Notes: a model not told the origin generated them from the letters alone. A stretch of 64,000 nt of DNA from Saccostrea cucullata (GCF_032062105.1 NW_026925239.1:62001-126000); one strand, 5' to 3'. Shown: positions 2,026-49,379, numbered from the stretch's first letter. Numbers and translations: made by a program.

Positions 2026-3544
2026 AATGTGACAATCTTGTTGTGTATTAATGAAAAATATGCGGAAGCAAGCCTGCATACACGTAATTCAACTTTTTTG
2101 AACGATGGGTGATTTTTTCTACGAATTTTTTAAGGTGTATCATTTCTGTTGACAGCCCCCCCCCCTTTACTAAATGTCTTATGACGTACCTGGCTTGAAC
2201 AATAAAACTCGTATCTTTATCAACATGCACAATATATGTATTCCATGGGGAAAAAGACGACAAATATGAAAATATTATTTTCGGGAAAAAAGTTTTCTGT
2301 ATCTATTCTAAAACGTACTTAAAAAAGTTCGTTCCATGATGAAATACATGTACTTTCGAAAATTTCAAAGTAGTTCTAATCTACTACAAATTTTCAAGTC
2401 TGACAAAATCACAAGATTGTCGCGCTTTAGATTTAAAGGAATTCATTTCTAGCAGGAAGTTATAGGCTTTTATTTCCAATTTCCATATAAAAATATGAAT
2501 GAGGATCTTTAAATTAAAGCACCCAAATCAATGACAGAAATACTGGTCATTTTGTGTGGAAATAATGGATTATTTACTTTTGTTTCTTCACAGCTTATCT
2601 TGCATCACACAAAACTAATGAGCCTAGGTATAAGAAATATTAATCACTTTTCAAAAGAATAGGTTCGTCATTTTGAATTAAATTCTTCACTGACTGCATA
2701 GTACTTGAAAGAATGGATATCGATTGAACTGAACTTTTTTTTCAACCTTTTTTTTTTTCAAAATCAAAATTTAAGTGAAGCAGCTAGCATGCAGCTAGAA
2801 AGGGTCACAATGCAGGCTTTTGGGGGGTAAGGTGGCACAATCAATTGAAACACTTTCAGCTATCATAAATCTAATTCGATGTGAATATTATTGTATTATT
2901 ATTGAGATCCATAAAGTGGTGCTGTTTTATAAAGTATTCTGTGTATCGGCGAAAATTATAAAATTGTTCAGGGCATGACCTCTCCTAGCTCGGTCGTGCC
3001 CCCCCCCCCCCTCTTTGCGCATTCGCTTTTATTTTCGAACAGTTCAGACAGACAAAATGTATCAAGAATCGTCAAACAAATAATAACCACCGAATGATTA
3101 ATTCTTGATAATTGCAGAGTTAATCAATCAATCAATCAGTGTATATAACACTGTATAATAATACGAAAGAGACTGTAAGTAAATTGACACCCCCATGCCC
3201 CCCCCCCCCCCCCCCTCGGAAACCTCTGTTAAGTTGGAAGGAAGAGTCACATTATGAAAAAAAATGAAATTCTGCCATACTCTCCACCACCACCACGAGG
3301 TTTCTTTTACATTTAGGCTGACCTGGAATCTCTGATCTCTAAAAAAAATCCTGAATCCGCACCTGTCGACCATGCTTGAAATCCGTTCATTAGAGGTTTC
3401 TTGGATTTTTTTTGACCGATTTTTTCAAACGTTAGATTTTATTTTTGACATAGTTATAAAAGTCGCAATTAGTATGACTTTTGGGTCCATATTTTCGCTA
3501 AATTGGGCCCTGGACCGACTAAGATTAAAAATCACGGACTTGAA

Positions 3545-3615
3545 GCGCTATTTTCGCGCCATTTTCCTTTCAATCGGAAGTGAAGTAAAAGTCAAAAGGT
3601 GACAGGCAAAATGGT
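3545..3615 (+). promoter_or_regulatory. Putative CpG-containing promoter (YY1 + ETS), possibly the distal TSS of the SLCO gene
   Basis: CGCCATTTT 3557-3565 and CGGAAGTG 3575-3582 in a locally CpG-rich patch. The link to SLCO is inference only. Confidence 0.35.
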
Positions 3616-30220: not shown

Positions 30221-31817
30221 GTTCTTTTTAGCCCTGTAATAGAGATGTATTAACTTCTGTGGAGTTTGGCACTTTGTGGTCGAGGAGAGCAGTGAGAGGG
30301 GGCTTTGTTGATGTCACTGTCATACAGGGTGGCTGTTTATAGTTTCTGTAGGATTTTTTCTGTTCTGAAAGAGGCAGAGAGAGTAAAGAAGTCTAGGCAT
30401 AAACAGCAAGTGTGCATATCTGCAATTCAGTATAATCAGCAAAATTTTATGGTATTTTTTTCTAATTTGAATTTGCTGATAAAAAATTTTATAAAAAATA
30501 AAATTTTCCATTGTCGTTAACAGTAACTTTTAATATTTTCGTCTTTTTCTTAAGAATTTCAGCACAAATTGCCACTATGCATCCTTGGATGAAGGGGATT
30601 TAAGTTTGTTCAATTGAAGGGAATCTTTCATATGGAGATAATTAAAGTGAAACCTGTCTTATCTGGTTTGCAAAAGGAGACAAACTTTGTGTCGGAATAG
30701 ACAAGGTATCGAATTGCACTGTGAGTGTAAAAACTTATTGAAAATTATAAAATTGGAAAGAAACCTTATATCAGATTTCACAGTGTTTTGGATTGTACAG
30801 GTGTTGGATAAGACAGTTTTCACTGTAATGAAGAATGTCATATTTTTAAAAAAAAATTCCCCTTGTGAATAAGCTAAGGAGGCATCAATAACCTTTAGTA
30901 GAAACAATTTTCTTCCGAATCAATGTAATTTGTCATCAATTTATTTTTTGGAAAAATTCAACTAATATCATTATTGGCTTATAAATAACACATTACAGTT
31001 TATTTTCAGACAGTTAATTTCTTCTTATGTCCGCAAATGACAAGTGGTTTTGTGTAACACAAATTGATGGCTTTAGTTGTTTATTAAGCTTATTTATCAT
31101 CAATAAGGTTTTTCCTGTTATTGCTGCAGCCAGATAATAGCTCAGTCTTCTCTCCATATGGTCTGGTATTTTTTCTGCTGAATCAGCATTGTCCAGGAAT
31201 GGATTTTTATCCTCTCTGTCGAGTTCAGAGTCTTGCTAGATCTTGGTAACCTTCCCAAACTCCTTACAAATCTATACTGATGCAATTTCTCTTTGCACTG
31301 CAAGCTAAGCACTTTAGTGACTGATGAAAGAGGAAATGGCTGTAACAATCCCATTGAATACATCCTAATGCAAGGTCATCTTGATTTGATATTCTATTTC
31401 TTATACCTTGTAAACCAGAAATATTTGCTTAACTGGTTAACAATGTCTTCTCTTTTGTATTTAATAATAAAATTTGTAACTAAATTAATTGAAATAACTT
31501 TAAGTAACTTCAGTTCATAGTCTAATTTAGCATATTCACTATGTTCTCTTTATAATCTTTTTCTCTGAAAGTACATGTTTTCTTAACATTTGGACTTAAT
31601 GAAAGCAATGTCATTGGTCAATTGGTTGCTTAATGACTTTATTTGTCTGTAAAACAACTTTAACCTGATCAGTGTTTAAGTCTCTTCTAAGTGCACAATA
31701 TTGATCAGTCTTGTAACCGCATTTTGATTTTTTCTTCCTATAGAGTTAAGGAGGGCAGATTAGGAGCAATAAATCAGTGGTTATGGTTTGATATTTCTGT
31801 CACACTATTGATTGTAG

Positions 31818-32060
31818 ATGACGAGAGAGGAGAAGTCACACCTGAGTGACTCTACACAGTATTCTTACATGCCTAATGCCTCCAACGTAAACACACCAGA
31901 CGAGAAGGTCTACTTAAGTCCCTTTAACAATATGGAGCCTGGGTCAGGCGAGACGGAGGAGGAAGCCTGTGGGTGGCTGGGGTGCCGCCACGCGGCCCTA
32001 AGGAGGTTCCGACACCCCACCTGGGTCTTGGTGTTTCTGTGCTGGGCTGGGGCTATACAG
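31818..32060 (+). CDS. SLCO4A1: SLCO4A1-like OATP, alternative first coding exon 1a (81 codons)
   Basis: MTREE...ACGWLGCRHAALRRFRHPTWVLVFLCWAGAIQ then CAG|GTGAGT phase-0 donor; matches the pre-TM1/TM1 region of OATP4A1. Confidence 0.88.
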
Positions 32061-33486
32061 GTGAGTTAATTACAGGTATTATAAGGTGTGATGTGACTTT
32101 ACAAATATTATTAGATGTATGTGTGAATAAAGGATATATTTTTCAAATCAGAATGGAAATAGGAGGGGAAGGTTGTAGTTTGTTATTTTGTCATCTGTAT
32201 TGGACAGGTGTTAGTAAATGGGGGAGTACAGACAGCGTAATTAGTTTCTTGAGGGGGAAAGAGGAGGAGATGCTTAACATATTGCTCCCACCTTAACAGA
32301 AAGGAGTAATTTGTTTTGAAATGGGGTATGGAAGTGGTTTAGGTTGATTAACTAGAAAATAAAAATTAAAGTTTTCATAATGTACAGGTATAAGATTATG
32401 CAACAGGTGTTAAATGTCAACTCATGTAGAAAAAAAGGAATGGTTTAGTTGTGATCAGCATAAGAATTAATCACAATGCTTTTTTTAAAAACATTATATT
32501 AAAGGCAAAGTAAATTTTATTACGCCTTATGTAGACCTATAGAGCTTATGTTGAAAACTCAGGTAGTATAAATTGCCCATAAATCATCCACCCCAAAATA
32601 ACCTGAGTTGAATTGAAGTCCAAATGGTTCCCAATGTTTGCACATTTCTAGTGTGCATTCATAGATTCATTTTATTAGCATATTTTTCTCAGTTTAGAAT
32701 TTATTTTTCCATTGACTGATAGAAGGTATTAGGGTAATGATCCGCACTGATTGGTCAGTTATCGGTGTACCATACATCATAAGGGGGTGTATTAAATTTA
32801 CCGTGAAAGATGGCTCTGTATTGATGTTTTCTCAGCCTTTAACCCTGTTCACTGATGCTTTCTGCATTTAATTTTTGTGCTGTTTGCTGAGCAAACATAG
32901 TTTCCTTTAAGATAATCTGATCATCCCTTCTTTCACAGCTGAGTTTTTACTTGTCATCATTGTGAAAGTTGTTGTTTTTTTTGTTTTGTTGGGAGTTATT
33001 TGCCTGTATGGTTTTCTGACAGGTACTTGTGTATTTTAACGCTGTATTAAACACTTACTACAAAAACACAAAAATAAACTCCTCCAAAGAAGATCACATA
33101 TGTACGAGTATAGCATGCATGTCTCCTATAGGGGGATCCGTATATACTTAAATGAATTTATTCAGATTTTTAAAAAATTGAAATGATACACATAAAAAAA
33201 AGAAACTCAAAAGTTTATTAAAACCCAGAAAGACCGTCAACATTATAAATAAATAAACAGAGAAGTAATTTTCATTTCCTTTAGGTTTCAGACAAATTAT
33301 TTACATAACTGAGTATAAAGATGTTGCATAAAAATGTTCCTAGCACTTCAGTAAAAACATGTTTTACTGCAGTGATATGCAGCTTAATTTATATCTGTAT
33401 GGAAATCATGCTTCACATTCAGTTAAGAAAGGAAACTGTCAGGTATAATCAAAAGAAATGCTCTGTCAACCCAAAAATTGTCATTT

Positions 33487-35240
33487 TTAGCTCTACTGGT
33501 CAGAGACCAGAAGAGCTTATGCGATAGTAATGCGTCCGGCGTCCGTCCGTCTGTCCGTCTGTCTGTCTGTCTGTCTGTCTGTAAACAATTTTTCAAAATG
33601 CTACTCCTCCTACAATCTGATTTCAATATAACTTGGCATATAAGTAGACTACACTAAGATACATAATTCTGTGTACGATGAACGGTGTTGGCATTGTTAC
33701 TAAAAATAGAAATTTCTGTGAAATTCTTTCAAAATGCTACTCCTCCTACAGTTTTGGTCTGATTTCAATATAACTTGGCACACAAGTAGACTACACTAAG
33801 ATACATAATTCTGTCTATCGGTTTTTGATTTCAACGAACGGTGTTGACGTTGTTACTAAAAATAGAAATTTCTGTGAAATTCTTTCAAAATGCTACTCCT
33901 CCTACAGTTTTGGTCTGATTTCAGTATAACCTGGCACACAAGTAGACTACACTAAGATACATAATTCTGTGTATCGGTTTTTGATTTCAACGAACGGTGT
34001 TGACGTTGTTACTAGAAATAGAAATTTCTATGAAATTCTTTCAAAATGCTACTCCTCCTACAGTTTTGGTCTGATTTCAGTATAACCTGGCACACAAGTA
34101 GACTACACTAAGATACATAATTCTGTGTATCGGTTTTTGATTTCGACGAACGGTGTTGGCGTTGTTACTAGAAATAGAAATTTCTTTGAAATTCTTTCAA
34201 AATGCTACTCCTCCTACAGTTTTGGTCTGATTTCAATATAACCTTGGCACACAAGTAGACTACACTAAGATACATAATTCTGTGTATCGGTTTTTGATTT
34301 CGACGAACGGTGTAGGCGTTGTTACTAAAAATAGAAATTTCTATGAAATTCTCTCAAAATGCTACTCCTCCTACAGTTTTGGTCTGATTTCAATATAACT
34401 TGGCACACAAGTAGACTACACTAAGATACATAATTCTGTATATCGGTTTTTGATTTCAACGAACGGTGTTGGCGTTGTTACTAAAGATAGAAATTTCTGT
34501 GAAATTCTTTCAAAATGCTACTCCTCCTACAGTTTTGGTCTGATTTCAATATAACTTGGCACACAAGTAGACTACACTAAGATACATAATTCTGTGTATC
34601 GGTTTTTGATTTCGACGAATGGTGTAGGCGTTGTTACTAAAAATAGAAATTTCTTTGAAATTCTTTCAAAATGCTACTCCTCCTACAGTTTTGGTCTGAT
34701 TTCAATATAACTTGGCACACAAGTAGACTACACTAAGGTACATAATTCTTTATATCCGTTTTTGACTTCAATGAACATTATTACCTTGGTTAATAAAGAT
34801 AGCAATTTCTGTTACTCTCAAAATGCTACTTCAAATACAGTTTTAGTCTGATTATAATATACTGTATACAGGGAAATTTTCGCTCCCGTTTTATTTTCGC
34901 CCCTTTCGCCCTCTCCTTGATTGGACGAATTTAAAACGGGGCGAATTCAAATTAAACCTCATAATTTCTTGAGCAGAACTGTGACTGGACAAATTTAAAA
35001 GGGGGGAAAACTGTGCATAAGTTCAAAAGGGCGAAAATAACACGGGGCGAAAATAACCCTGTATACAGTAATGTGGCATGCAAGTAGACTATACTAAGAA
35101 CATAAAGAAACTTATTCAAGGATCATTATTCTCTTTTTTGCTAGTGTAAAGTTTCAATTCCCAACTGCTTAAGTACTTTCCTCTTCCTTTGCTATAAGAA
35201 CAAACCAGTAGAGCTTCAGTCTCGACAGAGACTTCTGGTT
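33487..35240 (+). mobile_element. HINE family A with 156-bp array (~8.5 units)
   Basis: Same termini and unit as the other two copies. Confidence 0.9.
34862..35068. mobile_element. Tc1/mariner-like MITE nested in HINE
   Basis: TA-CTGTATACAGGG...CCCTGTATACAG-TA. The empty site (ATAATATAATTTGGC) is visible in the HINE copy near 5755. Confidence 0.85.
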
Positions 35241-35455
35241 CACAAAGTATTCAACAATAGTCAAGACAATGGAAAAGTTGGCACTGTATTTAAAGAGTGC
35301 AGTTTGGCTGTTCTCTAAGTATGGTCTTTATTTTGCTCTGTGCAACTGTTCATACGGTAATTACTCTTCAAACCTTGTTCTATGTACCCTAAATTCTTTA
35401 AAATAATTTGATGGAAACGTGGTGCATACATAAATACATTTCATCTTGTTCCAAT

Positions 35456-35671
35456 GCTGTGAAATCACTAATTTTCGTGGGGATTTAATTTTCGTGGTTT
35501 TTGAGGTATGAAGAGATCCACGAATTTATGTCCACAACAAAATGCAATTTTATACATATATTTATACTACTGAACAATTCATCAACCACGAAATCAAATC
35601 CTCATGAACCAATATATTTTCCTCAAACCAAGAAAATTTTACCCCCTCGAAAATATGTGAATTTTACTGTA
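35456..35671. mobile_element. Degenerate mariner-like MITE
   Basis: CTGTGAAATCACTAATTTTCGTGG ... GTGAATTTTACTGTA with TTTTCGTGG subrepeats; a related remnant lies at ~54925-55088. Confidence 0.55.
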
Positions 35672-37048
35672 TTTAGAGTCACCGAGAATTATAAAAAACA
35701 GAAAAGTAGGAAATTCTATACAAATGAATTAAGCCATTTGTTAATGAAGATTAATAATGAAATGATGCACTTTAAAGGGCAGTCATTTTACATCCTGCTT
35801 TTCAACAGAAGAAAGTTGTAATGAAATTAGTATCCTAATTGTATAGAGTGTAGTAAATAACTTAATGGGAATAAGATTACACAAATAGTAAGGATTTTAA
35901 ATAAGTAAAATATGTATCTTTTAAGCCACTGAATAAATAGAAATTCACTTAATAAGGGTGTTGCATATATCTTTATTGAATCTTAACAAAAGACCTATTT
36001 GAGGAGAGAGTATGTGAAAGGAAACATTAAGAGAGCAGTGACATTGTAGGGATCTGTAAATATCTAAGGGATTTAGTTTTTGTGTGCTATACCAGAGGAC
36101 TCCAAATATTCCGCTGATTTATTGAAGCTTGATGTAGATCCATCACCATACTTCTTTCGGAGGTTTGGCCATCTTGGACTGAAGGCAATTTATTGTAGAC
36201 TTCATAGTTATGTCTTTTGGGATTCTGAGCATTTTTGTCATATTACTGGTGCAAAATTGCTAATTTCACGGATAGTGGTCCACTTTTTGCGGACACAATT
36301 GGAAAAGGAAGAAATTCAATACTATAAAGGAAGTGTGTTGTGTGAAGTCGCATTTTACGTCATATGCTATATAACTGCTCTTTTGACAAACAATATTGTG
36401 CTGATTTGAACAAATAATATTGGCTGTTTTATAAGTCATCCTTTGGTAAATGGAGTGGATGAAAATATATAACTGTTATGTGCCTGCATATTGTATTACT
36501 GACTCTGATGACTGACGAGGGAATTGGTTTTGTGCATTATTTGTAATTTACTGAATGAGTTTGACGAGTTGGGAAGATTTGTACAGATTATATTGCCATA
36601 TTGACGAGTTTATTTCATTACATCGAGAGATTCATTTCCATATGAGATCAGAATAAAAAAAAGTGACCGTTGGTGCCAGGACACAGGCATGGTCAGACGA
36701 TATAATATATGCTCAGTGGCCAGCGAACATGATAAGCGTATCATTTAGTAGTCACTATTAATGATGACACCCTGGATCAGGATATAGGTACTTTGCACTG
36801 CATTCACCGACACGTTATTTTCACCGTTACATGAAAATTTTCCTGGTTACACTCGGCTGAGTCCTACGGAGGATCACCCAACTTCCTTTATATTTAGGAC
36901 GTTGCAAAAACCACTTGCGCATCACCATGTGAAGAAAAAAAAATATATAGCAAGGAAAAGAGTGAGGTTCATGGAAAGGTTGCACTGTATTAGTGCACAG
37001 TATCAATAATTTATATTTTTATGAGTGGTGTTAAATTGCTGGGAGAAG

Positions 37049-37447
37049 ATGAGTAAGAATTTAAAACGGTGCCTTTCTGGAGATGTGGACAGCATAGAGA
37101 TGTACATACTGCCAGAGTCAGGCCCCGGGGAGGGGCTGAAGGGGTCATACCAAGGAGAATCTTACAGCTCTACATTAGACTCGACGACAGGTGGCAATAC
37201 CTCAGGTGTGTTTGGTAATACAGAAGATTACAATAAAACTAAAGTGTCTGATATGTACACAGAGGTATCTGACGACATGGAGGGTGGATTTGACTTCTCG
37301 AGGAAAAAGTCTTCGCAGGGAAAGGATTACGATCTCGAAGAAGAGCCTGCCTATTGCTCGTACTGTGGCTTTCGTTTTCTGAGATTTACCCCCACCAGTT
37401 TCCGAGTCCTCATACTGCTAGCTCTTTCTGCGGCGGCCTTTGTACAG
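37049..37447 (+). CDS. SLCO4A1: SLCO4A1-like OATP, alternative first coding exon 1b (133 codons)
   Basis: MSKNL...YCSYCGFRFLRFTPTSFRVLILLALSAAAFVQ then CAG|GTAATG phase-0 donor. AAAFVQ matches the OATP4A1 TM1 segment CAAAFLQ|GM. Confidence 0.82.
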
Positions 37448-37567
37448 GTAATGTGTTCTAACAAGCATTTCAAACTTCTGGGTTTTTTTTTTTACTTTCA
37501 TTCTTTTTGATAAAAATGTGTGATATTTTTTGTCCAGATTTAAGATATACCTGAAGTCATTGACTTT

Positions 37568-37685
37568 TTAGGTCACCTGAGTAAACTCAGGTGACCTATT
37601 GCTATCCGTTTTCGTCCGTCGTCGTGCGTTGTGCGTCGTGCGTTAACATTTGAACATTTTCAGCTTCTTCTCTGCAACCACTGAA

Positions 37686-37716
<31 letters not shown>

Positions 37717-38601
37717 TATGGGTGAAGGGGAACAAAAATTGTGAATTTCATGATCCCTGCCCCCCTGGGGCCTGAGGGGTGGGGCCAAAACCACTAAAAT
37801 TAATGCAATCTTAAAAAATCTTCTTCTTTACTCCTGGAAATCAAGCAGTCAAACTGTTTGCATGATTGTAATTTCCTCTACCAAAATTGTGATATATTCA
37901 TGGCCCTGGGGTCAGGGGTTCTAGTGCTAGGGTGGGGCTAAATAATTAGGTAGTGAAAATGCATTATTTCTTTGAAATTCTTCTTTTCTGCTCCTGGGTA
38001 TTAAATAAACCAACTAAATACATAGTTATGATGAGCAAGAGTGCCTCTACCAAAATTGTGAATTTTATGGCCCCAGGGAGGGGTTCTGGTGTTAGGGCGG
38101 GGCTCTATTGATTATATAGTAAAAAAACATGAATGAAAATCTTCTTCTCTGCTCCTTATTTACTAAGTGCATAGTTATGTTGAGCTAGAGTGCCTCTACC
38201 TGAATTTTAAGGCCCCAGGGTCAGGGGTTCTGATGTTAGGGCGTCGCTCTATTAATTATGTAGTAAAAATACATTAATTTTTCGAAAATTTTCTTCTCTG
38301 CTCCTGGGTATTAAATAAACTAACTAAGTGCATAGTTATGATGAGCAAGAGTGCCTCTACCAAAATTGTGAATTTTATGGCCCCAGGGTCAGGGGTTCTG
38401 GTGTTAGGGCGGGGCTATATAGATTATATAGTGAAAATGCATTATTTCTTTGAAAATATTTTTCTCTGCTCCTGGGTATTAAATAAACCAACTAAGTGCA
38501 TAGTTATGATGAGCAAGAGTGCCTCTACCAAAATTGTTAATTTAATGGCCCCAGGGTCAGGGGTTCTGGTGTTAGGGCGGGCCTATATAGATTATAGAGT
38601 G

Positions 38602-38635
<34 letters not shown>

Positions 38636-39411
38636 GCTCCTGGGTATTAAATAAACAAACTAAGTACATAGTTATGATGATCAAGAGTGCCTCTACCAAA
38701 ATTGTGAATTTTATGGCCCCAGGGTCAGGGGAAATGATTATATAGTGAAAATACATGAATTCTTTGAAAATCTTCTTCTCTGCTCCTAGGATTTAAATAA
38801 ACTAAGTACATAGTTATGATGAGCAGGAATGCCTCTTCAGAAATTGTATATTTTATAGCCCCAGGGTCAGGGGTTTGGTGTCAGGGCGGGGCTCTATTGA
38901 TTATAAAGTGAAAATACATTAAGTCTTTGAAAATCTTCTTCTCTGCTCTAGGGTATTAAGCAGATGAACTACCTATGTAGTTATGATGGACAAGGGCCCT
39001 AATCTTCAAGAATTGTGAATTTCAAGGCCCCAGGGTCAGGGGTACCATAGAAGAGGGGGGTGGGGGCTCTACTAATATACTGAAAATGAATGAATGGTTT
39101 GAAATTTGCTCCTTGATATTAATCAAATATCAAGGCCTAAGGGTCGGGGGTTCATGTGTGGTAGGGGCACTACTGATTATTGCTGAATATTACTGATTAG
39201 TTGAAATGCATTTTTTGCTCCCCTACCCTGGGTATTGGCATTAAGTTAACAAACTAAGCAACTGTTAAGTGTATTGTTATGATGATCAATGGTGCCTCTT
39301 TCAAAATTGTGAATGCCATAGCATCTGGCTTAAAACATGAATCAAATTCAATCACTGGAAAGTTTGTTGCATAATGCTCAGGTGACCTATAAGGCCCATG
39401 GGCCTCTTGTT
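37568..39411 (+). mobile_element. HINE family B carrying ~168-bp (Cg170-like) satellite units
   Basis: 5' AGGTCACCTGAG-TAAA-CTCAGGTGACCT hairpin, GTCC/GTGC microsatellite, ~168-bp units, 3' CTCAGGTGACCT + AGGCCCATGGGCCT + CTTGTT. Confidence 0.88.
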
Positions 39412-42400
39412 ATCAAGTAAGGTCATTACTTTCTTGGAATACGCCCATTCATTGCAGTGTTAGTTTTTACCTCGGACAAATATGATTAAATTTGTTGCTT
39501 AATGATTTTTCACTAATTTGATATATTTATTTACTCAATGCACTGTAAACTGTATAAACTATGTCAATACTCTTGACAGAATGGGATCAGATTGAAGTTA
39601 ACTAGCTATTTTTCCTCAGATTTTTATTGGAGTCAAATCTCTTTCTGGGGGTGTTGGATGATATTTCCCATTTACAGCTTGTAGACATTCAGACTGCATA
39701 TTGATCACTTCTGGGAAGAATTCCCAATACCCCCAAAACTTATTAACCCAAATGTGGTGGTCTTTTATTTGACATTAACGTGGATAACTTAGGCATAGAC
39801 CTTGAAAGAAATATAATGTAGTAAAAGGAATTTTGAAACCTCAAAGTTTTCATTTAGAAAGCATATTGTATTGGACAGGTGTGGTAAAGTATTTTGTGGT
39901 AATATCATTGAAGCCTTTGGGGTCCTTATATTCTGAGTTCTGGAGAATTATAGCTTGTTTTATTGCATATACAGAATAAGATCTAAATGTCATTAGGGTG
40001 AGGCCAGTGCAGGGTTAAGAGAGAGCTATAGATTGTGCTGATTAAATGCACCGTGTATCTCAGAACCACAAAAATTGAAAAACAGTTATACATAACATTG
40101 TAAAACTTTTTATCTCAAGTAACTCTGTTTCCGTGTACCCGAGGCTTGCTTTTACCCCTTCAAAGAAAGTTCTTTATTGCATCCCCTTTTTTAGAGGTTT
40201 AGATTTACGGTCCCAAAAAAAAAAAGAAAAGAAAAAAGAGGAATATGGGGAAATAATATATCTGTATGTCTGACCCAGTTTAACCTTGTATTTTTTAACT
40301 GTCTGTCTATATAAGCACTGTTTGTTTAACTCAGTGAAGATGTTCAGTTGATTACTTTGGATGCATTCTTAAAATTCATCATAACTATAAGAATTTAAAG
40401 ATCATTACACTTACAGAATATATAGGTATTTAAATATTTAGCTTGCATATATTCTATTGTAGAGTATGTATTTTTGTGTTACAGACAGGAGTAAAATGCT
40501 TTCAATGTTCCCAGCACGTTAAACGCGTTAAGCTTTAAAATCCTTCCAGGTGGTATAAATATTCCCCTAAAGCAATTTCACTGTCTGTTTGTAAGTACTT
40601 GAGGGATTTTTAATAGCGGCACATAAAATGGCTCTTATAATTACTGCTCCAAAGCTTGGAAGAACTAATGCATTAAAAAAAAAAATGTGCTTTGTAATGA
40701 AAAAGTAAATAAATGGTACTAATATTATTATACTAAAAAATCTGCTATAAAATCATCTAAATGAATTATTGGAGCTGAATTAAGAGGACAAAAATTATAT
40801 CCATTATAGAAATATTACATGTTCTGCAAATAATAAAAATATGTATATAAAGATTTTTATAAGTGTGCTTTGTAGAATAAAAAGTCTTTTAAAAATTCAT
40901 CTACACAGTAAAATCTATTTTTCCTCCAATCTGTATCATTGTAAGGTATCTAGAGAGAACAAAAATATCCTAAATCTGTCATAGTTTCGATGCTATCTAG
41001 CAAAAGATGAGAGACATAATGAACATTATTTCTGTGAAGGCATATATTCTCTGATCTATCTGGGAGATCTAGGGGATTTGAACACTGATGGGGATATATA
41101 TTTCAAAGATGTTTTGTCTGATGGTTTGCAGTGATGACATTCAATCTTTTTTTTTTTTTTTTGGTGTGATAGCAGATAAGTTTTTTTTAGTGGTATGAAG
41201 TGTTTAGTTTTTCAGAGAAAATGGAATAGGTTATTTAGCAAAAGAAAAATTTTAAATAATCAAATATCATCTTAATTATCAAGAAATTTACATCCCTGAG
41301 CATTGAATACTCCTGTTTGTTATAAAGGGCAATAACTCTCTATAATGCATAGTTTTTTTTTTGTAATTTCAAGAAGCACATTCTTCAAATTTAAATTTTA
41401 ACACAGGTCACCATAGGAATGTATTTTTTTTCAAAGTCTTTGTCTGAATCTCGGTTTGATCTCAATCCTTGAACAGAAATTAGTCCCTTTTTGTATTTTG
41501 CAATATCCTTACAAGAATATTCCAACTGAACCAGGTAATAATTGTTGAATAAAGCCATTAGCAACCCTTTTTTTTTTTTTTTTAATAAAAGGCAATATTT
41601 ATTGCTAAATCAAGTACTGAGAAAATTTTAAATACCACACAAGTTTTTTAAAAAAAAATTGAAAGAAATGTACAGTAAGAACAGTAAGAAGAAAATGGTG
41701 TTAACACATTAATGATGCAAGCATACTATATAATTCAGTTTCAGTCAATTTACTGAATTTTAAGAAGCCGAGCAATTTAAGGACATTTTGACATTGGCTG
41801 AGAGTCTCTTAGGTATCTCAAGTGTTCAAATGATTGTGAACTTAAATGGTACATTGAGATTATATATGCAGCTTAAGTGAAATGGTTTTTAGAAAAAATC
41901 TAATTTCTCTAAGTGCTGATTTAAAATTATACTAAAAACTTACCATTTAAATGTTGTTTTTTTTTAAAGCATTTAAATAGGAGTTGTGATGAAGCATCAA
42001 TTTGAATTTTCTCTAATCAAGATTTATATGCTGTAAAATGTCTTTATCACTACAAAATTTCTAAAACAGAATCATTGAATTAGTATTTGCACATTACCAA
42101 TGCACTAAAATGTTTCTGCAATTCAGAAAATTTTAATGCACTCAAAATTGTGAAAAGTATCAGATTTTAAATTCCCGAATCATTTTAACTTGAGCATTAT
42201 AGCAAGTGTTAAATTACCAGGCGATTTCCTCTTGATTTGTAATATCCTGCATGATCAAGCATTAAATTTCCAGCTGCTCTGGAAAAGATGAAGTCAACAA
42301 AAAATACCAGTATAAACAGGCCACTCAAAGACATTATTATAAAATTTTGGGGGCATTTATCTAAATTTGCAAGTTCTGTGAAGTTTTGTTTAATTGATTT

Positions 42401-43989
42401 CTTGTAGTCCTGTTCAAGGTCCTGAAGATTACAAGTTTTATAATTAGCCATTAAAGTTAACGATCAGATATACAACAGCAGAGAACATGAAAACTTCACT
42501 TAAATGAAATTAGCATGCAGTTGTGTTTAAAAGACGTACATTATCTGATGGGCTTTTTTAGATTCTAATGTGTATTTTCTTTTCATACTTTTCAAGAAAT
42601 AGTTGAACTGGAATTAGATTCTGAAATCCTTTTAACCTAATTGCACTTCATTAATGGCATTAAGAAAAAAAACTATCTTTGTAGTGTACGTGTTTGTACT
42701 TCATTTAATAGTAAAGTGGAAATGTTGTGCAGGGTTAATGAAGATGTGTCCTGATTCACGTTAATCGGAGGCAGCATGTGCCGGGACATGAGAGAGATGT
42801 TATCACAAAGTGACGACCCCTGTAGTAAACACCGTAGTATTTTATCAAATGTCAAATTTCATGCTTCGCGGTAGGAAGCTTTAAGGTTAAGGGGCTAGCA
42901 AGCTAGTCAGAAGTGTGCAGCATAGGGCAGTATATAAAACATGGCGGGACGTACGGGTCCTTTTTGTCATTTTGCTGAGATTTGAAAATGTTGGCTGCAC
43001 TGCATTCATGTACACAATTGAAATTCTCCAGAAGTGTGTAATCTTTTGACTCCTACAGATTTACACTTGATTTATCAGCCATGTGCACTATATGCTTTAT
43101 ATGCTTTTTTGATACATTGCATTTATCTTGATGTCATTCGGGTCAGACAAATCTATAAATAAATGTTTTACATATAAAAAATGAAAAGCAAACAGTCTGT
43201 GTAAGTTCTTATTTTCAATTAACCTGTATATGTTTGCTTTATCAGTGTTTTAGATAAGAAGGTATCACATTAGAAACTTTGTAATTTCACATCTGTAATT
43301 TTTACTGAGGCATCTTCATTATCTCATAGTTTTATCCTCTTGTTTTTTAATGGCCCAATTCAGCAGAATCAGATTGTTAATGTTTTCATTTAGATTTCTA
43401 GACAAAGATTACAAATATCTTCTAAGGGCAGTTAAGTCATTTCTGCTATTCAAACAATCTCTTAAAATTATTATTGGATGTACTATGTGGCAAATAAGTT
43501 TTTCATACATTTAAGCTTCTCCTGAAATTATGTTTCATACACAAATCTTTTTTGTAATGACTCAAATTATTAGACTAAGTTTCATTTTCACAAAAGACTT
43601 AGATAATTACAGCTCTTGACAGCTAACTAAGTGTAAATTCTCTGGATTCAGCAGGAAGCAGATCATTTTACAACTGTCTTGTTTCGCCTATTAGGGATTT
43701 CTGATGTAACTTGGTATTAAATCAATATTTCATTTTCTGCATGTTGCATTCTGCTTATGGTGTTCTGTTCTACTGATGAAATTAACTATCCATTTTACCA
43801 AATATCAATGATTTTATTTTAGGTCAGATTGCAAAGCAATTTTTCCATCTTTACAACTATTTACACCAAGAATTGTATTTGGTTTTTCTGTTTTTGTCGA
43901 AATATACTTTAAAAATTACATATCGGATGAAATGTTTATTATATATCATCATTAATCTTTTGTTAGTTGCTACTATCAGTTTTGAATTT

Positions 43990-44066
43990 CTTCTTGTATG
44001 TTTTTCTCTTTACTTGTAAGCCCTGATGGGCCCCAAATTGGTATTAATAAATCTTATCTTATCTTA
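43990..44066 (+). mobile_element. Probable 3' remnant of a LINE
   Basis: GCCC-TGAT-GGGC hairpin (44020-44031), AATAAA (44046) and (TCTTA)3 tail; same architecture as the 3' end of the full-length LINE. 5' boundary undefined. Confidence 0.45.
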
Positions 44067-44583
44067 TAACTGTAAATTGTGGTCTTATCTATGGTATTGA
44101 TGAATTCAATAGTTTTAAATCTGATGAAAGTGAAGTCTTCCTTATTGAGTGCATGCAGACTCAATTTGTTCAAATCATGAAACCCCCTGAGCTAGGGTGT
44201 TACTACAAAAGTTTAAAAAGGGATGTGAATAGGATTTCATTTGAAATTTTAAATTCTTCCTTTCATGAGCAGACTGTTGAATCATAATTTTTGAAGTCAA
44301 ATCAATAAGAGAATTTAGCATCCCTATATAGAGAAGATACGGGTTTCTTCACTTCATATTTTTTTAAATTATCAAATCTTTGAATTTCAAGAACAACAAG
44401 GCAACTAGTGCATTTTTAGGTACTCATATTATAAAATCAGATTTGCTTGTCTTGACACCTGTGATGTAGATTTCATGTGATTTATAAAGAAAGGTATATG
44501 GGGTATGTATATTTAAGTTATCTAATTTTAGACATATATACTTGCAATGTATAGATGTTAATGATTGAATTTTTTCTCTCCAG

Positions 44584-44755
44584 GGAATGGTGGTGAATGG
44601 TTTTGTGAATGTGGTGATTTCTAACATTGAGCGGCGGTACGACCTGACCAGTACGGAGACGGGAACCATCGCCAGCTGCTACGACATCGCCTCAGTCCTG
44701 TGTCTCATCCCCGTCAGCTACTTTGGAGGCCTGGGATGTAAACCTCGATATCTAG
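44584..44755 (+). CDS. SLCO4A1: SLCO4A1-like exon 2
   Basis: CAG| [40 protein letters not shown] |GT; classic OATP motifs; phase 0 to 1. Confidence 0.95.
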
Positions 44756-46088
44756 GTAGTCTATTACAAATGAATGTTCTCACTTCTATTTGAAGCAAAT
44801 CGCAAGGATTCACACCTTATTGAAATCACTTTGTCTATCTGTCTGTCTCTCTTTGGACTCTATTGAACCCTTAGCTCAGGTGAGCTAAAACAAATTAAAT
44901 TATTGTATATATTGCAGTATGAAATTTACACTGGAAATACGCATACATATCCCACAATGCATCTCTTGAAAAAATGACCAGGGTTTGACACTTAAGTCCA
45001 TCCAACTGACCCAGTCTGAGTGAATAATCATGTACATGTTAAATGTATGCTAATTAACAAGATTGATCCTGATAAAATGAGCAGCAAAATGAACCTTATA
45101 TATTCTTGACTGAACTATTCCAAACTACTTTATGTACATTTTTAATTACACAAAGAAAATAATACTGCAAAAATTATCCTTTTCAGGACATATAAGATAA
45201 GAGGTATAGATTGTATATGATATATGTGCTAAAAAAAATTTAAGAACAACCAGACAATAAACACAAATCTGATGTTGTTATATCTATAATACAGGACAAT
45301 ACATGTAATACAAACACAACAGTATTAAGTACACATTCAAGTTAGAAAACATGTCATCAAATAAAGCATTAACTTTTAAATCACAATTGTGCATGTACAT
45401 TACATTGAAGTAACAGTCATAAGTATTTGATGACCATGATGACATTGATAACTGTATTTAACAACTTATGAATTGTAAAATGATAAACTATTTATTCACA
45501 TAGCTATATCCTTTATACGATTAATTGTAGATGCCTAATATATGATATTTGTCATAAAACCAAAAACAAGCCAGAAAATTTCAGATGTAATTTGGTAGCT
45601 TAGATAAAAATGAAAAATGAATATAAAACTTCTTCAGAATCACCATCCCTCACTGCCTGTTCATAGGTATCATACAAGTTCATGTAGATAAGTAATAAAG
45701 TGACACCATTTGTTTGCATGGCAATAAAATACAGTGTATAGTGCATCAATAATATAAGTAAACAAGAAATACTGAATGATTATATATAACAAAGTTACAA
45801 CTAGAAGCTCCTTTAAATACCCTTAACATCAATGTAATAAAATCCACAAGTCTCTGGATGATAGGTATTATTCTGAAGTCTATCCCCCATCTATAATGCC
45901 TAATATTTACATTTGCAAATATCTTTCTTAGATAAACCTATTGAAGAGAAAATATGTTCAGTTCTGTGTGAATGTTATTTGGGGGTCAGAGGTCATAGCG
46001 CGACCGAATCACAGAGCGAGGTGATATTTTGTTCGTGTAATAAATGCAATTTAACTCGAAATGCATGTATTCGTCTCAAATGTAAATA

Positions 46089-46252
46089 TAAGTAATAAAC
46101 AACAATGTTAAAAAGTTCACTGGGAAATGAACTTTTAGTTGGTACGTGATCAAATCTACTGAGAAGCCCTTCGGGCTTCACAGGATTTGATCACGTGACC
46201 AACTAAAAGTTCATTTCCCAGAGAACTTTTTAACATTGTTGTTTATTTCTTA
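46089..46252. mobile_element. Near-perfect palindromic (hairpin) element
   Basis: ~80-bp arms AATAAACAACAATGTTAAAAAGTTC...; centre GAAGCCC-TTC-GGGCTTC. Confidence 0.8.
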
Positions 46253-46390
46253 ATTAAACCACTATGATATAATAAGTGGTCGAAGTACACCCCAAACACT
46301 TCTGATCTGGATAAGCAGGAACACTAGTTTGTACTTACAGTTCAGTTTGATTCCAAAGGAATGATTCAGTTGAGCAACATGATATTAAGC

Positions 46391-46819
46391 TTACAAAATC
46401 ACAATACTCCCATTGCACTGATCAGTACCTAATTTTTTCAGATCTCTCTGAAACTGACTGTCAATTGACAATTGTACTTCAGCATCAAGTAATGTTAACA
46501 TATTGAGTACTTCAGTGTCACTTATAACTTTCTCCACCTGTGGTCCATTGAATTCCTCGATTAGTTTGACACAATCTTTGCGATTAATCATTCCCAAGAT
46601 TTCTGATAGGTAATGAAGGTGCCTCTTCTGAATTATTTTTCTTGAGTGCAGCAACCTAAGAATGTCTGCTGAGGTTTGACATCTGGCTGTTTCTCTTCGA
46701 GTTAAGATTTTGTCCACCTCCAACAGAAGTTTGATGTTGGACAAGTCTTCCTGTGTCAGCTTCAGTGAAATATTTAGCAGGAGTTGAGCAAACTTTGATA
46801 TTTTACGTTCATCTTCCAT
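46391..46819 (-). CDS. Death effector domain (DED)-only protein 2, nested antisense in SLCO intron 2
   Basis: FAQLLLNISLKLTQEDLSNIKLLL...SADILRLLHSRKII..RHLHYLSEILGMINRKDCVKLI fits the six-helix DED pattern; ATG in good context (ATCATGG). Confidence 0.8.
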   Translation of the reverse strand: MEDERKISKFAQLLLNISLKLTQEDLSNIKLLLEVDKILTRRETARCQTSADILRLLHSRKIIQKRHLHYLSEILGMINRKDCVKLIEEFNGPQVEKVISDTEVLNMLTLLDAEVQLSIDSQFQRDLKKLGTDQCNGSIVIL

Positions 46820-47016
46820 GATGTCTGTCTCTGAGGGAATTTTGGAAATGAATTTCCCTATGGTCTATATTTAAATCACGCAATCAATAGAAACACCTCA
46901 GTTAGGTACTTTAAATACCTGTTATTATGTCCAATGATAATGATAGAGTCATGGTGCATGATTCACATGTTCTTGTATAAAACATTATTTAATGCATGAA
47001 CAATTCTGGAATACAC

Positions 47017-47562
47017 TCAAATGAAGGAGGATTTTCTCCTTATTTTGTCCTCATCACTATGGTTACTTTGGGTGTCCATCTCATCAAAATCTCCAGTTAA
47101 AGTAATACAATTGCTCGAGGGCCTCCAAGATACTTCTGTGCTTATATCCCTCCTCAGAACCACCATATCTGAAGATCTCCTCAATCTAACTTCAGAATCA
47201 TCATTGAAATGCTCTGTTTTGTCGAGGTCCTGTATTTCCAATTTCATCTTGAGGTTTTCTTGCTCCTCTTGGTATTTCTGAATTCTTTTGACACAGTCCT
47301 GGCGATGAATGCGCCCCAGTATTTCTATCAACAGGGTTAGGTCGTCTTCACGTATCAACTCCTTGTGAAACATAAACCTCAGCAGGTCGGCCATATTCTG
47401 TAGAGCTTGTCCCTCCCTTTGCCTTATGTGGCCACTGACTTCTAGCAGTAACTTGACTTTGGACAGTTCAGACTCGGTAAGATGATCATCTATGTCCAGA
47501 AGGAGCTGGGCCAGAGGTGTGATAGTTAGGGTCCTCCCAGATTGAGCAGCCATCCTTGTCAT
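47017..47562 (-). CDS. Death effector domain (DED)-only protein 1, nested antisense in SLCO intron 2 (alternative ATG at 47553)
   Basis: LAQLLLDIDDHLTESELSKVKLLL...MADLLRFMFHKELIREDDLTLLIEILGRIHRQDCVKRIQKY: DED pattern, paralogous to the neighbouring ORF. Confidence 0.82.
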   Translation of the reverse strand: MTRMAAQSGRTLTITPLAQLLLDIDDHLTESELSKVKLLLEVSGHIRQREGQALQNMADLLRFMFHKELIREDDLTLLIEILGRIHRQDCVKRIQKYQEEQENLKMKLEIQDLDKTEHFNDDSEVRLRRSSDMVVLRRDISTEVSWRPSSNCITLTGDFDEMDTQSNHSDEDKIRRKSSFI

Positions 47563-48418
47563 GTAGAATCGCACGGAATGAAGGTGCAGAAAGTAGGGTA
47601 CCTAATTCAGATTAGGCATAAACCTCAGGTGTATTGAATTGCATTTCGGTTACACAAGTCACTTTTCTGCTCCACTCATGTGTTTTATGAAGATAAACTT
47701 AAAGTTGGATTTTATAAGGATCCTCTCGGAATGAGCAGCCTACCTTATCACATAGAGACACATTAAATGAAAGCAAAGATTGCAGGGTAGTCCTGATTTT
47801 GATTACTCACAAACCTAAGGTGTATTGAATTGTCTTTCAATTGCACAAGTCACATTTTTCATCTTCTCCTGTGTAATACATGTATGAAAATAAACTTAAG
47901 GTTGACTCTCATAAGGTGCATTCCAATGTCCATAAGTTTTCACCTGTGTATAATTAGATTACAAAGAATTGTAGTTATCTTTAGGAATGTGAATCAGATG
48001 TGCATGCTCTTCTTTTATCTTGATATATTGTAATTCATGTGTGAGAGAATGTTGAAATGCTGTAGCCTTCCATTTAATAAGGAGGTGGGCTAGATGAGTG
48101 TTCAGTTTCCTTGATTGATTTATCTGATGACCAACATTTTAGGGGTGTAGGGGAGGGGGGTTATAGAGGAATCAACATGCATAGGCTACCCTATTCCTTA
48201 CCATTATAAAATTAACTCTGGCATCATCACTGGTGTGTGCAGCATGCATGCATGTTTAAGAATTTTATGCACCATCAGTTAGCCACAAATATACATTCCA
48301 ATGAATGAAAATTTAGTCAACCTTTAGGTTATTGAACCTTCTACAGTAAAACTTAGTTATAACAAAGTTCTGGGTACCTAAGAATAACCTTATTAATGTT
48401 ATATCTATCATTTTGTAG

Positions 48419-48691
48419 GTATAGGTATCCTGGTTATGGGCCTAGGATCTATCGTCTTTGCACTACCTCAGTTTACTACAGGGCTGTACTCGTTTACGGG
48501 AGATGACGTGACGTACTGTGATATCGGGGCCAATGTCACGGCATGTACCAGCAAGGACAGCCTCTCTAACTACAAATATGTCTTCTTCCTCGGGCAGCTA
48601 CTACATGGTGCAGGGGCATCGCCCCTCTACACACTGGGAGTCACATATCTGGATGAGAATCTGCCTGTCAGATCATCCTCCATGTATATAG
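48419..48691 (+). CDS. SLCO4A1: SLCO4A1-like exon 3
   Basis: GIGILVMGLGSIVFALPQF...GQLLHGAGASPLYTLGVTYLDEN; AG/GT, phase 1-1. Confidence 0.95.
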
Positions 48692-48937
48692 GTAATTGTC
48701 TGTGAAAATAAAAGTGTGAAATCAGGTATCAAGAGTTCAAATACTGAATATGTCTTAAATATGAACTTTGCTAACTAAAATCTGCTAAAATTTATTATTT
48801 GTGTTCAGGAACTTCATGACTGTCCAATTCCTTGTCCATTTATTTGATAGAGGGTCAAGTGATGTAAAGTTAAATGTAATTTACATGTTAGTATTCTATA
48901 CGTTCCTTATGACTCTTCATTTGAATACATTTTCCAG

Positions 48938-49040
48938 GTATTTATTATGCATTTGCTATCGTGGGACCAGCTATTGGATACCTCGCAGGGGGAGCATTCC
49001 TTAACATCTATGTAGATGTTGACACTGTGGACCAAGGCAG
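48938..49040 (+). CDS. SLCO4A1: SLCO4A1-like exon 4
   Basis: GIYYAFAIVGPAIGYLAGGAFLNIYVD; phase 1-2. Confidence 0.94.
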
Positions 49041-49257
49041 GTAAGGCTGTTTTAAAACAAACTTTGTACTGTGATGAAAATAAGTTTCTTTTTACCACAA
49101 GTAAACTACATTAATTTACATTAATGGGGTCAAAATGAAATTATTCTATTGAATATTCTTTTAATGTACCAGGTAGATTGATTAGAATTGCTGAGATTGG
49201 TAGAATCAATATTTTGAGATGTGTTAAAATATATAAGATATTCTTTGTTTTCTGCAG

Positions 49258-49379
49258 TATAAATCTGACCCCCAACAGTCCCCGGTGGGTGGGGGCGTGG
49301 TGGATTGGTTTCCTACTTAGTGGGGTCCTGGCTTTCCTGGTGGCCTTCCCCATGTGTGGATTTCCCACCAAACTGCCAG
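49258..49379 (+). CDS. SLCO4A1: SLCO4A1-like exon 5 (OATP signature)
   Basis: [12 protein letters not shown], the OATP superfamily signature; phase 2-1. Confidence 0.96.

Follow-up and report, generated by a model that had tools for sequence, protein, structure and literature searches.

A tandem pair of DED-only genes antisense within an SLCO/OATP intron of the oyster Saccostrea cucullata

An intron of an SLCO/OATP gene of Saccostrea cucullata contains two nested antisense genes, here called A and B, which are transcribed apart from their host gene and each of which encodes a small protein with a single DED. They lie in the window analysed here, a stretch of 64,000 nucleotides (GCF_032062105.1, NW_026925239.1:62001-126000; positions are counted from its first letter). 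The RNA data are contigs only, and the minus strand of the transcripts is taken from the ORFs, not measured. A and B are real genes: they are transcribed and conserved, the model of A has the DED fold, and both are members of a family of DED-only proteins. As a whole explanation we favour, with moderate confidence, a transcribed pair of DED-only genes, each with a single coding exon, that was duplicated in tandem within the SLCO/OATP intron and that would tune death or immune signalling through DED contacts.

Two DED genes in an OATP/SLCO intron

The host intron and the features of the two genes are as follows.

44756-48418, plus strand: OATP/SLCO host intron, 3663 nt, GT..AG; the flanking exons end at 44755 and begin at 48419
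47601-47916, no strand assigned: tandem duplication of ~191 bp in the 5' region of A, with 47601-47719 matching 47792-47916 at 72-82% identity
47563-47798, minus strand: transcribed 5' region of A as delimited by RNA contigs (47470-47798, 47576-47745 and 47435-47675), not by a mapped TSS
47017-47562, minus strand: coding sequence of gene A (ORF call), 181 aa counted from the first ATG
47263-47511, minus strand: DED of A, residues 18-100 (Pfam, AF2 and Foldseek)
47293-47304, minus strand: RQDC of A, the charge-triad motif with Cys for the Leu of RxDL, aligned to FADD RHDL and caspase-8 RLDL
47044-47067, minus strand: SNHSDEDK in the tail of A, an instance of the family hallmark [ST]-D-[DE]-[DE]-K, conserved in two family alignments
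46820-47016, minus strand: spacer between A and B, 197 bp, with a TATTTAAA-like element in it and RNA contigs across it
46391-46819, minus strand: coding sequence of gene B, 142 aa, a DED and a short tail without the family motif
46547-46792, minus strand: DED of B, residues 10-91 (Pfam, 44.7 bits; cut-off 35.9)
46571-46582, minus strand: RKDC of B, at the RxDL position in the alignment with human FADD and caspase-8 DED1

Two head-to-tail ORFs of 181 and 142 aa, 197 bp apart on the minus strand, had been reported in a preliminary description of this DNA, and the ORF positions confirm them. The same description gave each product one N-terminal DED and neither a death nor a caspase domain. Pfam agrees: A has a single N-terminal match to the DED family (PF01335) at 51.3 bits (gathering score 35.9), B has one at the score given above, and no further Pfam domain (neither Death nor caspase) is above cut-off in either protein. 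Its reading of the charge triad also holds when the two DEDs, which are 44% identical to each other, are aligned to human FADD and caspase-8 DED1: the acidic residue of helix 2 (E32 in A, D25 in B), the Arg and the Asp are all kept, and Cys is the fourth residue at the RxDL position in both. In the product of A the DED is followed by a disordered tail rich in Ser and acidic residues. The likelier start of A is Met4 (47553), which gives a product of 178 aa; we prefer it because it has the better start context and is aligned with the start of all relatives, and it is invariant in the clade alignment.

The AF2 model of A, built with the family alignment, has six helices over residues 11-105 (pLDDT of at least 94) and a disordered tail. 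This is the six-helix death fold, and the best Foldseek matches of the model are caspase-8/cFLIP DED assemblies and the FADD DED (TM 0.93, rmsd 1.1 Å), and for A the domain assignment made earlier stands in the predicted structure as well. The family profile likewise matches caspase-8 DED1 (1e-10), FADD (3.5e-6) and cFLIP DED2 (7e-5). At the surface, the helix-2 patch is Leu-Leu (KLLLEV) against Phe25-Leu26 of FADD, hydrophobic but not aromatic, and in helix 1 there is Leu at the position of caspase-8 Tyr8; with Leu at these two positions, canonical DED contact residues are altered. A complex prediction for the DED of A (residues 10-104) with the FADD DED of the same genome scored 0.00 in both runs, which is evidence neither of binding nor of its absence.

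RNA contigs from three runs splice 44752/5 to 48416/9, and the exon 3' of the intron encodes part of an OATP domain (PF03137, 73.9 bits, profile positions 76-172). The earlier placement in SLCO intron 2 is right as to the antisense nesting in a spliced OATP intron; the intron is an early one, and the number 2 would fit the OATP profile positions. RNA contigs from four runs cover ~46359-47798 inside this intron and are absent from the flanking intronic bins (44968-45800 and 47807-48307), and in one run the DED genes are covered and the SLCO exons are not. RNA confined to part of the intron, together with a run that lacks the SLCO exons, argues for a separate transcription unit rather than a retained intron. 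No GT-AG or CT-AC joint was found within the DED unit in the RNA contigs, and the coding sequences of A and B are therefore uninterrupted.

Two features of the surrounding sequence were also observed. The duplicated 5' region of A (both copies of which are listed above) contains a decayed copy of the start region. Directly 3' of B, at 46089-46252, there is a MITE-like inverted repeat with 55-nt arms that are 96% complementary and 54 nt apart; to judge from the very high contig depth over it in each of the four runs, this element is repeated in the genome. The AATAAA downstream of B falls within one arm of this repeat.

The RxDC clade and the mollusc-wide DED-only family

A single-sequence word search retrieved one relative only, and the family emerged from an alignment search and a full HMMER search. 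Against 1.84 billion representatives, the full HMMER search returned just six core representatives, all of which have RxDC. In the oyster clade as a whole RxDC is invariant (15 out of 15 sequences), and among the 144 further representative DED proteins that were checked it does not occur. The Cys that had been noticed in both DEDs is thus a fixed signature of the clade, and its invariance implies constraint. The redox-sensitive role that had been proposed for it is speculative and gains no support from these data. The tail SNxSD[DE][DE]K is found in every clade sequence (n=15) except Saccostrea cucullata B. The two tails had been called unrelated, which does not hold: A has the tail motif of the family, and it is absent only from B of this species.

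The second tier of the HMMER search contains 22 small DED-only proteins with a canonical RxDL and the tail [ST]-D-[DE]-[DE]-K, usually after SQxS[IL]. Its named members come from Crassostrea gigas, C. virginica, Pinctada, Mercenaria, Potamilus, Mya, Mytilus and the gastropod Gigantopelta. Across molluscs, much of the DED surface is less strictly conserved than this tail motif. In the tree, the DED-only clade (which includes a paralogue on contig C11115 of the same genome) is set apart from the FADD, caspase-8-like and DEDD-like DEDs of this genome with a support of 96/92, and its members have in common a two-residue insertion after helix 2. The C11115 paralogue, the third DED-only gene of the genome, has the same sequence (100% identity) as 'uncharacterized protein LOC134279497 [Saccostrea cucullata]'. 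It stands for the mollusc-wide parent family, and A and B belong to an oyster-specific RxDC branch of that family. This paralogue (L028:1327-1794(-); region C11115:200115-200345) is a single-exon gene of 156-167 aa with RSDL and a tail ending ...SLSDEEKLLLKKVAE.

An undescribed family had been proposed. This is correct in so far as no paper on such a DED-only family was found in the literature searched; however, the wider family is already in the databases across molluscs, only without a name, as its second-tier members are labelled uncharacterized, hypothetical or 'DED domain-containing' and nothing else. Two UniProt entries from Magallana gigas belong here. A0A8W8NLV0 is a 92-aa fragment of the intron-nested DED gene. 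In A0A8W8NLN0 (291 aa) a family member is joined to a C-terminal stretch that resembles a reverse-transcriptase fragment, and from its sequence this entry is probably a chimeric gene model. A and B themselves were not found in a collection of 5.8 billion proteins that does hold the NCBI-annotated LOC134279497 protein of Saccostrea cucullata. They appear to be unannotated, and their being missing from this collection means that intron-nested genes can slip past annotation.

The genome encodes FADD on contig C22775, with a DED exon (69.1 bits; L020:1387-1767(-)) and a death-domain exon (44.3 bits; L037:7938-8216(-)). The DED of this FADD has GRVDV at the RxDL position, which means that variation at the fourth residue of the motif extends to oyster FADD. 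Two tandem-DED loci are also found in the genome, and ~18 DED matches are above the cut-off when non-canonical ones are included.

Orthologues of A and B were observed in the same arrangement and in the same intron. A 2.3-kb Logan contig from another taxon (L005) carries an A-then-B pair of 168 and 171 aa, and its B orthologue keeps the tail motif. Magallana-type genomic contigs have collinear SLCO exons and, in the intron concerned, just one antisense DED gene, which resembles B (61%) more than A (43%). Nesting in the SLCO intron consequently predates the split of Saccostrea and Magallana, and an antisense DED gene would already have been present in this intron of their common ancestor. Either A is the product of a tandem duplication after that split, or Magallana has lost A. 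The tandem duplication named in the preliminary description is in line with the single Magallana gene, and the comparison of these sequences supports an origin of the A/B pair by tandem duplication inside the SLCO/OATP intron. The 5' end of the downstream SLCO exon recurs within this Magallana-type intron (contig L013) as three incomplete copies (3193-3282, 3357-3437 and 3533-3595), which correspond to 48400-48489 of the window.

At an acceptor-like CTCTTCAG located 220 nt 5' of the ATG, four Magallana RNA contigs part precisely from a 6.4-kb genomic contig. The divergence suggests that the Magallana orthologue has a spliced 5' non-coding exon, located beyond that contig; the first exon of this orthologue may fall outside the host intron. 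A search of the window for the Magallana non-coding exon gave only short matches at chance level. The term 'intronless', which had been applied to A and B, is for this reason valid for the coding sequence only. A derivation from a processed retrocopy, which had been suggested along with it, is without support: the C11115 paralogue and the other relatives likewise have single-exon coding sequences, so that this is a property of the whole family, a spliced 5' non-coding exon is suggested in Magallana, and no poly(A) tract was found in the sequence after the A or the B ORF (though the insertion is old and such marks could have decayed).

Contig C3505 (18.6 kb) is collinear with 31631-49353 of the window at 94-97% identity, with several indels, and on this basis we regard it as an uncollapsed haplotig. 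On it, A is intact (182 aa, tail motif kept), with 12% of residues different between the two A alleles. B is 129 aa on the haplotig, where a frameshift gives a different tail end and the DED frame is intact, and the RNA runs contain yet another, third variant of the B tail. Against the orthologues on the 2.3-kb Logan contig, the DED dN/dS values are low (0.14 for A and 0.11 for B; approximate, as dS is saturated), which indicates purifying selection within that approximation. Between haplotypes, the DED of B has a dN/dS of 0.59, based on few changes. A DEDD-like DED exon (…SRHDLLQYVTLRKRK…) is near-identical on contigs C7209 and C7343 (L023/L024), which are probably another haplotig pair.

Proposed role and alternative explanations

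Bivalves have greatly expanded sets of cell-death and innate-immune genes. Having no enzymatic or death domain, A and B would act by homotypic DED contacts. They may join or cap assemblies of oyster FADD, of caspase-8-like proteins or of other DED proteins, which are the candidate partners, and such capping would tune cell-death or immune signalling, perhaps as an inhibitor and perhaps as a promoter. The acidic Ser/Thr motif of the tail may serve as a phospho-switch or as a docking site; judged by its residues, it fits the consensus of CK2-type acidophilic phospho-sites (Ser/Thr with acidic residues at +1 to +3) and is a putative site of phosphorylation. B, in which the motif has been lost in Saccostrea cucullata, would act as a bare DED, and may be losing its function, given a tail that is degenerate and polymorphic. 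By analogy with PEA-15 and short FLIP, a decoy function is plausible for A and B; in vertebrates, PEA-15 and the short or viral FLIPs have a role as modulators or caps (PMC4558505, PMC5580472, PMC6651876).

We offer a broader hypothesis only tentatively. The molluscs may have single-DED regulators of their own, consisting of a DED and a disordered tail with SQxS[IL][ST]D[DE][DE]K[LIM], that fill the niche of FLIP and PEA-15, which bivalves reportedly lack. In infection or stress, assemblies of the FADD/caspase-8-like or DED-sensor kind would be capped or re-routed by a fast-evolving oyster RxDC branch of these regulators, one that became nested antisense in the SLCO intron and then underwent duplication, and whose tail would be a phospho-dependent switch read by a partner. 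No FLIP homologues were known in bivalves at the time of a 2021 survey of bivalve caspases, and a conserved and expressed DED-only family supplies concrete candidates for the FLIP-like brake on the extrinsic pathway that had not been identified in these animals (PMC7836458). The members of the family are small and easily cloned, and mutants are easily defined (the Cys of RxDC, the Leu-Leu patch of helix 2 and the Ser/Thr of the tail). The short tail motif, strictly kept from gastropods to oysters, points to a binding partner worth finding.

Several other explanations concern what the two genes are. They could be parts of a longer conventional gene of the FADD or caspase-8 type, in keeping with the one exon per DED of bivalve caspase-8 genes (PMC7836458) and with the Magallana UniProt model that extends a relative to 291 aa. 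We rejected this explanation, which is now largely refuted and very improbable, because both ORFs end in stops, no splice joints lead out of the coding regions, and the FADD and tandem-DED loci are on other contigs; in addition, the orthologues finish a few residues past the conserved tail motif, RNA coverage ends inside the intron, and the extension to 291 aa, being reverse-transcriptase-like, is apparently a model artefact. A and B could also form one transcription unit, with a common 5' non-coding exon or promoter and a bicistronic-looking RNA or alternative splicing, the two proteins being alternative products. RNA contigs run unbroken over the 197-bp spacer (one of 820 nt covers 46716-47530), an acceptor-like ccctcag is found 11 nt 5' of the B ATG, the apparent spliced non-coding exon of the Magallana orthologue joins at a point whose equivalent in Saccostrea is inside A, and both ORFs of the other taxon are on one 2.3-kb contig that has equal length in two runs. 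But contigs built from k-mers merge overlapping transcripts and cannot show single molecules, no splice joint was found in the region among the RNA contigs, the 2.3-kb contig may be DNA rather than RNA, and the spacer has an ATTAAA right 3' of the A stop and a TATA-like element ~95 nt 5' of B. We consider a single unit possible, with the odds against it.

The remaining alternatives concern function. B might be on its way to becoming a pseudogene that is still transcribed as a relic, and so might both genes in Saccostrea cucullata. B is without the tail motif that its orthologues keep in both the other taxon and Magallana, its haplotypes end at 142 and 129 aa with a third tail variant in the RNA, and its dN/dS between haplotypes is the higher value given above; on the other side, its DED frame is intact in both haplotypes and has a dN/dS of 0.11 against the other-taxon orthologue, B keeps the invariant residues of the family (including RKDC) and is transcribed, and both haplotypes have an intact A that includes the motif. 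Pseudogene drift is accordingly unlikely in our judgement. DEDs also work outside apoptosis, for example PEA-15 with ERK, and A and B may act outside the FADD/caspase-8 axis, as adaptors for other oyster DED proteins or through a tail that binds a non-DED partner in the manner of PEA-15 and ERK. The tail motif, which molluscs keep more strictly than a large part of the DED surface, suggests that it has a dedicated reader, the ~18 DED matches of the genome, non-canonical ones included, would offer other partners, and the contact residues canonical for FADD-type DEDs are altered. The closest matches in sequence and structure, however, are caspase-8 DED1, FADD and cFLIP DED2, and PEA-15 chains are missing from what the family profile retrieves at E<=10; we see a role outside this axis as a minority prospect. 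The explanation that we favour is still that of a transcribed pair of DED-only genes, each with a single coding exon, whose products would act through DED contacts, and it is this pair that we compare with known systems below.

Comparison with known DED proteins

PEA-15 resembles A and B in several ways: it is small, with one N-terminal DED and a flexible tail in which acidic residues come after Ser, and it lacks enzymatic and death domains. Language-model features also put the nearest cluster as PEA-15-like (0.89), which is a lead only. A and B differ from PEA-15 in having another tail motif, the two-residue insertion at helix 2 and RxDC, and the ERK-docking end of PEA-15 is not seen in them. 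Orthology with PEA-15, suggested by the architecture and by the language-model lead, was rejected because a comparison of the family profile with the PDB brings up no chain of PEA-15 at an E-value of 10 or less; among the Foldseek matches, PEA-15 occupies ranks 41-49 (16-19% identity). In PEA-15, phosphorylation of the tail switches FADD binding (PMC6651876).

The short form of c-FLIP and the viral FLIPs (e.g. MC159) are DED-only regulators of FADD/caspase-8 assemblies, and their fold and charge triad are as in A and B. FLIPs, however, have tandem DEDs in one chain, whereas A and B have one DED per protein and are in tandem at the level of the genes, with stops and a 197-bp spacer between the domains. 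A pattern scan of IMG/VR found no viral relative.

Caspase-8 DED1 and the FADD DED are the best matches of the A/B family in both profile and structure comparisons. The proteins that contain them are built differently: FADD has a death domain in addition to its DED and the DED caspases have a p20/p10 domain, whereas A and B have neither, and no splice joints lead out of them. The mollusc DED-only family (e.g. LOC134279497 and XP_011437045.1 of Crassostrea gigas) is the sister clade, and it shares with A and B the architecture, the helix-2 insertion, the tail motif and a coding sequence in a single exon. Its members have RxDL and their loci are elsewhere (on C11115 in this genome), whereas the clade of A and B has RxDC, is nested in the SLCO intron and has so far been found in oysters only.
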